Assembly (NCBI GenBank): GCA_002104945.1
Contig: MCFH01000034.1
Span: 310,001 to 374,000 of the forward strand
DNA from: Piromyces finnis finn
Taxonomy: Eukaryota > Fungi > Neocallimastigomycota
Direction: 5' to 3'
DNA length: 64,000 nt
Below, one piece after another: positions 6,001 to 9,000 of this stretch. How positions within the stretch are numbered: the stretch's first letter is position 1; each line of letters begins with the position of its first letter. The position numbers were made by a program, and so were the translations under genes. The notes under the pieces were generated by a model. That model worked only from the letters and a program-made list of their open reading frames with translations, did no database searches and had not been told where the DNA came from.

Positions 6001-9000
6001 ATATTTAAAAATTAAATGTCATTTCAAAGCTATATATTATAATTTCTTAAAATATATACCACATATGAATATAGCATTAATTCTTTTTTGATATAGTTGT
6101 CTTTTGTTAATTATTATTGGTAAATAACTGTTAATCAATTCTGGTGCTGCGCTAGGTGAATTTTCTTTAATCAATGTAATTAAATTATGAATAGCATATA
6201 TTTCACCATCACATTTTTCTGTTGATGATGTAATTGTTGAAAGAATTTGTCTAAAAGCAGTTGGTGAATATTCTTCATACATATATATATTATAGTAAAA
6301 TGAATATTAAAAAAGATTTTTTAATTAAGAATTGTTATAATAATTACCAGATAAGTTATGTAACCCTATTATAGCAGTCTCAATAATTTTACGATTTTCT
6401 AAACAAACATCTTGATATAATAAATCAGATAGTACTTTAGAAATTTGAACAAGGGACTCATCATGATAACAACAAAACTCAGAAAGAACTAGATATGTTG
6501 CTAACTAAAATGAAAGAATATATATTTTTTTTATTTGTGTTATGCTAAAAACTAATGTGTTTTTATATCGAAATTATTATTTTTTTCAAAATACTAACTT
6601 TTAATGGCTTTGATTGTAAGAAACTTAGTAAAAAGTAAATAATTTCACCAATCTTTTGATTGTAAACTTTTCCACAGATTTTTTTCGCAGCTGCTTTTAT
6701 ATATGGCATATAATCCATTGAAATTGGAGGAAGAGTAAGAGATTCCTCACTTTCAATTTCAACAATCTTATATAATATTATATATTTATATTATAGAATT
6801 AGTTAAAGTAAAGTTTATTTAATTAAATATTTTATATTACCAATTGTCTTTTTTTGGCCTTATTATATATTTTATCAACATCATTTCCAATTTCATCAAT
6901 ATCTTTTTGAGTTAATACTGATGTTTCAGTTTCCTGTAAAACTTCTTCATAGGACCTATAAATACATGTTAACTAATTTTAATAATAAAAAAATAAACCA
7001 ATATGTATTTAAATAATTTTGATATATACTTTGAAGTTAAAGAAGGAGAATCTTCATTATGTGGTAATAATTCATTTTGGAGAAGTTCAACTGAAAAAAG
7101 GACATTTTTAAGATATATATTAAATGTTTTTCTAACATTGTAATTTTCATCTGCTAATAATGGTAAAACAATCCATAATATTGTTAATCTTTCTAATGAG
7201 CTCAACTTTTCAACCTAATTCCAATTATTTTATAGTTGAACAAAACATGTTTAATAAATAACAAAAATAATAAGTATATTAAAAAAATATATTAATTCCA
7301 TATTTACCTGATTAATAATGGCTTTAAATGTTACTAATCTTATTCTATAGTTTTCTGAAGTAATGTATTTTAGAAGCTCTCTAATAATCGGTCCACAATG
7401 TAATTTACTTTTAATACAGCCTAATGCACTTATACTATACATTATGATACCTATTATGTAAAAATATTATATAAAATAATAATATAATAATATATTAATA
7501 ATAGCAATTATAATGTATGTAAAAGCATTAGTATTTAAATCAATAATTTGTCAACGAACGTTCTGATTCTTCTTTATTTAAATTTGATATAAGTGGATCA
7601 GATATAGCTTCTAATCCCTTTTTATTAATTATCGATATTTCATTAACAAGGTATTTATAAAAATCTTCAATTTGACTTTCTGTTGCACAGCTGTAAATTA
7701 AATTATATATTCTTGAAGCCAATTCTGTGATAAATGGATTATCATCAGCAAACATTAATCTTATAGAATCTCTTATATCTGGAAGTCTTGGTCCAATAGC
7801 TTTTGGAAAAACTAATATTGCTGTTTCAATAAATAATAATGCACCCTGCTTTAATAAGTCTACTGGACTATTATGCAAAATATCTAATGAGTAATCCAAA
7901 AATTGAGCCATTAAACATTGACTTACTAATGGAAGTTTTATTAATATTAAGTATCTAATTATATCAATTCCAGATCTTTTTATAATATAATATAATATAT
8001 AGTAATTAATATATTTATTGAGATTATTACTTATTATATTACTAAATATTTTAAATTCTTACAACTTAAAAGACCAATATTTGCTCACTAGCATTTTATC
8101 CTTTACATATTCCATTAATCTAAATAAGGTTTTATGTTTAAGAACAATTTGACGGAAGCAACATCTAATTAACGTAAGATATGCCATTCTAAAATAATAA
8201 AATAAAAAAGCAATAAAATTTATTATATTTAATAATTATTCTATATTTGTAATTTCCTTTAACTCATTGTTTAATTAAAGATCTATACTTTCTAAGTTCT
8301 TTATCTGGGATACCAGTTAGTGGCATATTACATAGCATATAACCAAGAATAAATCTTCTTTTTCCAATTATTGATGTAGGCATAACATCTCTTGGTTTAT
8401 TATTACTGACGTCCTAAAATATTTAATAAACATTTATTTTGAATATTTATATATTTTTAGACTATATAAATGAGTTACTTTAAAATTAAAATATGATATT
8501 TATCATTTAAGGTGTACATTTAAAGCAGGTGGTGGTATATTAAACTTTGAATATAGTATTGAAATGAAGAATGGTGTTTGAATAAAGAAATTTGAATAAT
8601 TATATTCATCTGGTCTTATTAACTGATCCTCAGGACAATTTTCTAAAAAGAAATCCCAAAACTTATCGGTAATGAAATCTTCAAATAAAATATTGGTTAA
8701 ATTTTGGAAATTATTTTGATTTGTTAGTATGGCATTTACTAAGTTGTCATATGTATTTTACATTAATATATATAATATTTGTTAAGGAAATATATTTTAA
8801 GAAATAAAATTAAAAAGCAATAGTTAATTTAATTGTAATATAATAAAGGATATGAAAAAATAAGTTCGTCCATATTTCTATTTTCAAGAACTGACTTAAT
8901 TTCTTTTAATTGGGGAATTAAATCTTGAAGAACAGTATTATAAGATAATTTTATAATCATATCTAAAACTGTGATTGCACTTTATAAATTATAAATGAAT

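Follow-up and report, generated by a model that had tools for sequence, protein, structure and literature searches.

The closest described systems are the U12-type AT-AC introns of animals and plants (PMC3584512) and the minor introns of Piromyces finnis itself, for which Larue & Roy 2023 (PMC10639083) report minor introns along with minor snRNAs. The first of these sources gives 11-13 nt as the optimum distance between the branch point and the 3' splice site, and treats this short distance as characteristic, not as defining, of U12-type introns. According to the second, the phases of U12 introns are biased against phase 0 and follow the order 1 > 2 > 0. Our material and that of PMC10639083 have in common the fungal group, very probably the genome assembly, and four snRNA families detected by the same Rfam models. 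A first-pass annotation of the locus described here had stated that the minor splicing machinery is retained only in some early-diverging fungi, which agrees with PMC3584512 and with PMC10639083. The intron at 8853..8753 is a sound but ordinary example of a kind of splicing already published for this species (PMC10639083); if that study used a GT-AG-only public gene model, its intron set would exclude this one.

The locus lies within a window of 64,000 nucleotides (contig MCFH01000034.1, positions 310,001 to 374,000), which is about 19% G+C and 81% A+T. On the minus strand of the window, at 8753..8853, we observed a 101-nt segment of 85-90% A+T that is very probably a functional phase 2 U12-type AT-AC intron in the gene for a large HEAT-repeat protein of this anaerobic gut fungus. 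The assignment is drawn from the splice signals, from the collinearity with homologues, from a relative without the intron and from an orthologous intron in a second relative.

The signals are read directly from the minus strand, and the 5' splice site, the branch box and the terminal AC, which the first-pass annotation had fitted to the minor-intron consensus, are all found at the positions it gave. The 5' splice site ATATCCTTT (8845..8853) conforms to the U12-type consensus /ATATCCTT, and the branch-point box TTTCCTTAAC (8781..8790) conforms to the U12 consensus TCCTTAAC, with the core TTCCTTAAC exact. The intron ends with AC at 8753..8754, and AT-AC termini thereby stand at the boundaries that restore the frame. 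The reading across the intron is ...gaa ctt att ttt tc/ATATCCTTTATT...ATATTTCCTTAACaaatattatatatattaatgtaaaatAC/a tat gac aac.... A polypyrimidine tract is absent before the 3' splice site, the 28 nt from the box to the AC being a mixture of A and T with 12 pyrimidines. Two adenosines, at 8782 and 8783, are candidates for the branch point and are located 29-30 nt from the 3' end. We infer both the identity of the branch adenosine and the actual splicing of the segment. The branch consensus had been called perfect, which is correct for the box itself, while the spacing of the box to the 3' end is atypical. Similarly, phase 2 had been assigned correctly, while the description of this phase as typical for U12 introns was loose given the phase order quoted above from PMC10639083.

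Compared with the U12-type AT-AC introns of animals and plants (PMC3584512), the P. finnis intron is alike in ATATCCTTT and TTCCTTAAC, in the AT-AC termini, in having no pyrimidine tract, in a phase other than 0, and in signals that are kept between species. It differs in being short and so rich in A+T, and in a branch A that is 29-30 nt, not ~11-13 nt, away from the 3' end.

Taken alone, each of the two main motifs occurs in the window at the chance level: RTATCCTT was found five times with 8.1 expected, and TTCCTTAAC once with 0.8 expected. For the two motifs in order on the same strand, no more than 300 nt apart, arithmetic from the single-motif background rates gives about 0.01 expected occurrences per window. 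Only two of the five RTATCCTT sites of the window have a CCTTRAY box downstream, and both are at frame breaks of one gene. We extended the search to the whole assembly (56,455,805 bases in 232 pieces) with the strict pattern ATATCCTTT-N30-300-TTCCTTAAC, using as a control the same pattern read backwards. The strict motif pair was found 14 times in the genome, compared to a single occurrence of the reversed control. Judged by ORF continuity, 12 of these 14 loci (L016-L029) are flanked on either side by an open frame and have an AC that keeps it.

The borders of the intron are constrained by the reading frame. The upstream coding exon (8854..8979, minus strand) ends with ...AITVLDMIIKLSYNTVLQDLIPQLKEIKSVLENRNMDELIF + tc and is translated as ...NRNMDELIF(S); the downstream coding exon (8518..8752, minus strand) consists of a + YDNLVNAI...PPPALN, with the translation YDNLVNAILTNQ...PPPALN, and is followed by a GT-AG intron. 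Removal of 8853..8753 joins ...ELIFS to YDNLVNA in phase 2. The restored frame that had been proposed, IFS-YDN, is thus present as E-L-I-F-S-Y-D-N and is collinear with the homologues as well as with the intronless relative. We listed every GT-AG, GC-AG or AT-AC pair whose use leaves an open frame running from the upstream exon into the YDNL frame. In this complete enumeration, none of the 26 frame-keeping solutions was a GT-AG or GC-AG intron bridging the two exons. Since no such pair connects the exons, an annotator that accepts only GT-AG introns fails at this place, as the first-pass annotation had anticipated when it stated that such annotators would break the gene. AT...AC pairs are trivially common in DNA so rich in A+T; among those that keep the frame, only 8853/8753 has an RTATCCTT 5' site and fits the intronless relative. 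The tetranucleotide ATAT stands at both borders, so by sequence alone the cut may slide by up to 4 nt. To our knowledge, AT-AC is the sole known intron type among these sliding registers.

We found no transcript-derived protein across the junction, either among the homologues of the downstream exon or in a search with the naturally continuous exon of the intronless relative, which matched only two already known genomic ORF fragments. Among representative matches there was no full-length gut-fungus protein that has the downstream exon, an observation that fits a broken public gene model and is no proof of it. Four sequencing runs, putatively of RNA, contain 21-52% of the words of the region.

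The search with the downstream exon produced 48 homologues at E<=1e-3, including chytrid proteins of 1945-1990 aa. At the junction the homologues read L(K/R)A-YD(E/D/N)LAN with no extra residues, and ELIFS-YDNLVNA of the window fits this pattern. Two gut-fungus relatives allowed a comparison at the level of nucleotides. The first one (contig L006, 78% aa identity) has one uninterrupted exon at the position of the intron (L006:1047-1406), which reads ...gaa gat ctt att aaa gca tac gat aat tta gca.... The window matches it codon for codon only when exactly 8853..8753 is taken out, and the register of the terminal AC fits this relative in the same way; this collinearity is a direct observation. 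At neighbouring positions the same contig has GT-AG introns.

The second relative (contigs L009-L014, 81% aa identity, from several independent samples) has an intron that falls on the same codon in the same phase. It is 97 nt long (L009:7752-8207 region) and reads tta tc/ATATCCTTA...TTACCTTAAC-25 nt-...AAAATAC/a tat gac aat. Directly visible in the alignment is the conservation of the 5' site (8 of 9 bases the same), of the CCTTAAC box (identical) and of the last seven bases, with AAAATAC/ATATGAC kept across the 3' border. The intron interior is 61% identical between the window and the second relative, compared to a mean of 62% for shuffled sequences, while the nucleotide identity is 76% in the upstream and 82% in the downstream flanking exon. 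A drifted interior with kept signals is the pattern that would be expected if selection acts on the splice signals only. A metagenome scan by protein alignment confirmed nothing.

As a separate observation, the intron is present in the gut-fungus lineage of L009 and absent, with exact codon collinearity, in the metagenome lineage of L006. Because one gut-fungus relative keeps it and another cleanly lacks it, it is useful for the study of loss and gain of minor introns within one fungal phylum.

The proposed mechanism follows the established minor-spliceosome pathway. The U11/U12 di-snRNP would recognise the 5' site ATATCCTTT together with the branch box TTCCTTAAC, the latter through base pairing to GUAAGGA, which lies close to the 5' end of this genome's U12 snRNA. 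The U4atac/U6atac.U5 particle would then join, and excision between ...TTTTC and ATATGAC... would give the reading ...ELIFS-YDNLVNA....

The genes of this machinery are directly observed in the genome. With Rfam models on the genome assembly we found all four minor snRNAs, two of them over the cut-off and two just under it with diagnostic features. U12 scored 66.6 bits (cut-off 53) and contains GUAAGGA, to which the branch box is complementary. U6atac scored 52.1 bits (cut-off 33) at C112:211500-211648 on the plus strand (L002:1501-1649), the sole U6atac-like locus in the genome. The U11 candidate (C152:317514-317628, plus strand; L003:1501-1615) has 38.2 bits with a cut-off of 39, i.e. 0.8 bit under it, and possesses the conserved UGCGGAAUCGAUAUCAAGAGAUUUCG loop as well as the AAUUUUUGA Sm site. 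The U4atac candidate has 49.2 bits with a cut-off of 53, i.e. 3.8 bits under it, and shows both a K-turn stem-loop and an Sm site; stem II is formed by its 5' end CGUCCUUAUCU and AGAUAAGGACG of the U6atac candidate, which are perfect complements. The major U4 is found at a separate locus with 89.9 bits, so the U4atac candidate is distinct from it. By these features, both sub-threshold candidates look real.

Three protein domains associated with the minor spliceosome were also found with Pfam models: zf-U11-48K (27.9 bits), the ubiquitin-like domain of SNRNP25 (35 bits) and CCDC84/CENATAC (in three exons). The zf-U11-48K domain occurs in TRM13 as well and is therefore weak evidence. Together with the four snRNAs, these domains bear out the earlier claim that the intron implies a working minor spliceosome, which is not new for the species (PMC10639083).

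Three features of the system are unusual. First, the short distance between branch point and 3' splice site is not seen: the distance is 29-30 nt in the window and ~27 nt in the relative. At the 12 strict-motif loci with ORF continuity, the distances from the box to the first frame-keeping AC are 10, 12, 12, 13, 23, 28, 28, 33, 34, 40, 42 and 63 nt. Roughly half of the strict-motif AT-AC candidates of the genome have a spacing over 20 nt, as defined by frame continuity only. Because of the long box-to-AC distances at these loci, the spacing rule seems relaxed in this genome.

Second, the sole U6atac reads GUGUUGUAUGA-GCCG-AGAGA where the Rfam consensus reads GA-AAGG-AGAGA. Elsewhere the molecule is intact, with the AGAGA box, the stem II pairing to U4atac and the U-tract all preserved. 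Incorvaia and Padgett reportedly found in 1998 that C5C6U7U8 of the 5' site are the pairing partners of the AAGG bases of U6atac. A pattern scan of metagenome contigs returned five U6atac genes, all five with the canonical AAGG. The GC content of their contigs ranges from 36 to 59%, compared to 20% at the U6atac locus of P. finnis, and for this reason none of the five looks gut-fungal. An approach to the U6atac of a relative via the neighbouring gene gave no match, that gene being without homologues. The altered U6atac box is so far an observation from a single genome.

Third, the 5' end of the U11 candidate is AAGAAAAG where the consensus has AAAAAGGG, i.e. the GG that would pair with CC at the 5' splice site is missing here too. 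The introns of the genome retain ATATCCTTT despite the altered boxes of U6atac and U11. It is possible, though we hold it doubtful, that the minor spliceosome of gut fungi (Neocallimastigomycota) is a modified one, in which the branch-to-3' spacing is relaxed to 10-60 nt and the sole U6atac, perhaps also U11, has lost its GG, the partner of C5C6 in a 5' site ATATCCTT that is still conserved. Should this tentative reading be true, the 5' site would be recognised in the catalytic step by proteins or through a smaller number of base pairs. Both the altered box of U6atac and the long spacing from branch to 3' end are possibly new, and they would bear on how strictly the RNA-RNA contacts of the minor spliceosome are needed.

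The same features could be taken to mean that the AT-AC intron is removed by the major (U2-type) spliceosome. AT-AC introns of the U2 type exist, though they are rare; the branch box of the intron at 8853..8753 is, like those of U2-type introns, distant from the 3' end, and the boxes of U6atac and U11 that pair with the 5' splice site are degenerate. Still, the 5' site is ATATCCTTT and not an AT variant resembling GTRAGT, TTCCTTAAC is the exact U12 consensus, and both signals are kept in an orthologous intron whose interior has drifted. The ~14-fold genome-wide enrichment of the motif pair and a 3' end with no preceding pyrimidine tract point in the same direction, and we regard removal by the major spliceosome as very unlikely.

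The reading of 8853..8753 as a U12-type intron can also be considered in the context of its gene. The multi-exon host gene occupies about 3050..12174 on the minus strand and encodes a HEAT/ARM-repeat protein of ~1900-2000 aa, as delineated by tblastn of three homologues and by Pfam domains of homologues. The tblastn queries were full-length chytrid or chytrid-like proteins of 1945-1990 aa, namely P0006 (Spizellomyces punctatus SPPG_01373), P0018 (Batrachochytrium dendrobatidis BATDEDRAFT_24972) and P0009 (a transcript-derived Logan protein). Their alignments to the window, in which some places were masked with N for the local tblastn, are collinear from position 12108 to 3053, and the gene follows the full-length homologues over ~1980 residues with no frame damage. 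On the homologues, Pfam found HEAT repeats only. Searches for a family name with Pfam on single exons, a PDB sequence search and a protein atlas returned only generic HEAT-repeat resemblance; because these sources add nothing specific, the host product is best called a putative uncharacterised HEAT/ARM protein of ~2000 aa.

The host gene has a second U12-type AT-AC intron at 11177..11324 on the minus strand, 148 nt long and in phase 1, with the signals ATATCCTTT...TCCTTAAT...ATAC and ~27 nt from the branch box to the 3' end. Chytrid proteins have adjacent residues on either side of it (233 and 234 in P0006, 203 and 204 in P0009), and L009 carries its orthologue with the same signals.

With respect to the history of the two introns, we found none in Spizellomyces and Batrachochytrium at either AT-AC position, and a search by motif found none elsewhere in the orthologues. 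GT-AG intron positions next to the AT-AC ones are common to the window and the chytrids, for example, after residues 683, 800 and 840 of P0006. Since one gut-fungus relative and two chytrids are without an intron at the codon in question, the intron at 8853..8753 would be either ancestral with several subsequent losses or gained within the gut fungi.

A gain of a particular kind was considered, in which a mobile element similar to an 'introner' and equipped with minor-type signals inserted recently and left the ATAT of the borders as a target-site duplication. Such an origin would account for the patchy presence in gut fungi and the absence in chytrids next to chytrid-shared GT-AG positions, as well as for the 4-nt repeat at both borders. 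The repeat is trivial in DNA with 81% A+T. We compared 16 AT-AC introns all against all and found in common only the motifs and simple repeats; the intron at 8853..8753 matched none of the others. The lack of a common sequence family speaks against a mobile-element origin, which we rejected as quite improbable. It would, in any case, concern only the origin of the intron and is compatible with minor-type splicing.

It is scarcely credible that the 101 nt are no intron at all and represent an insertion or an assembly error in a gene that is decaying or wrongly assembled, with motifs arising by chance in AT-rich DNA (each motif singly is at chance frequency, and the L006 relative is without the segment), given that an independent relative from other samples has at this codon a segment that bears the three signals as well, that the gene is collinear with its full-length homologues with no frame damage, and that the second intron of the same type behaves alike.

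For annotation, the enumeration of intron pairs means that GT-AG introns by themselves do not give a model of the host gene. Because the gene has two AT-AC introns, its public models are probably broken or leave out exons.

A few minor observations concern other places of the genome and of the window. The strict-motif locus L029 is apparently situated within the gene for the largest subunit of an RNA polymerase (...VIMGIPMHVGTGIFKLLQ). About 550 nt downstream of the U11 candidate, on the other strand, there is a SNORD14-like box C/D RNA (L003 2162-2325; 52 bits with a cut-off of 64). In the window, the block at 24001-28000 is the most G+C-rich one (25% G+C) and has a strong G-over-C skew of +0.28.
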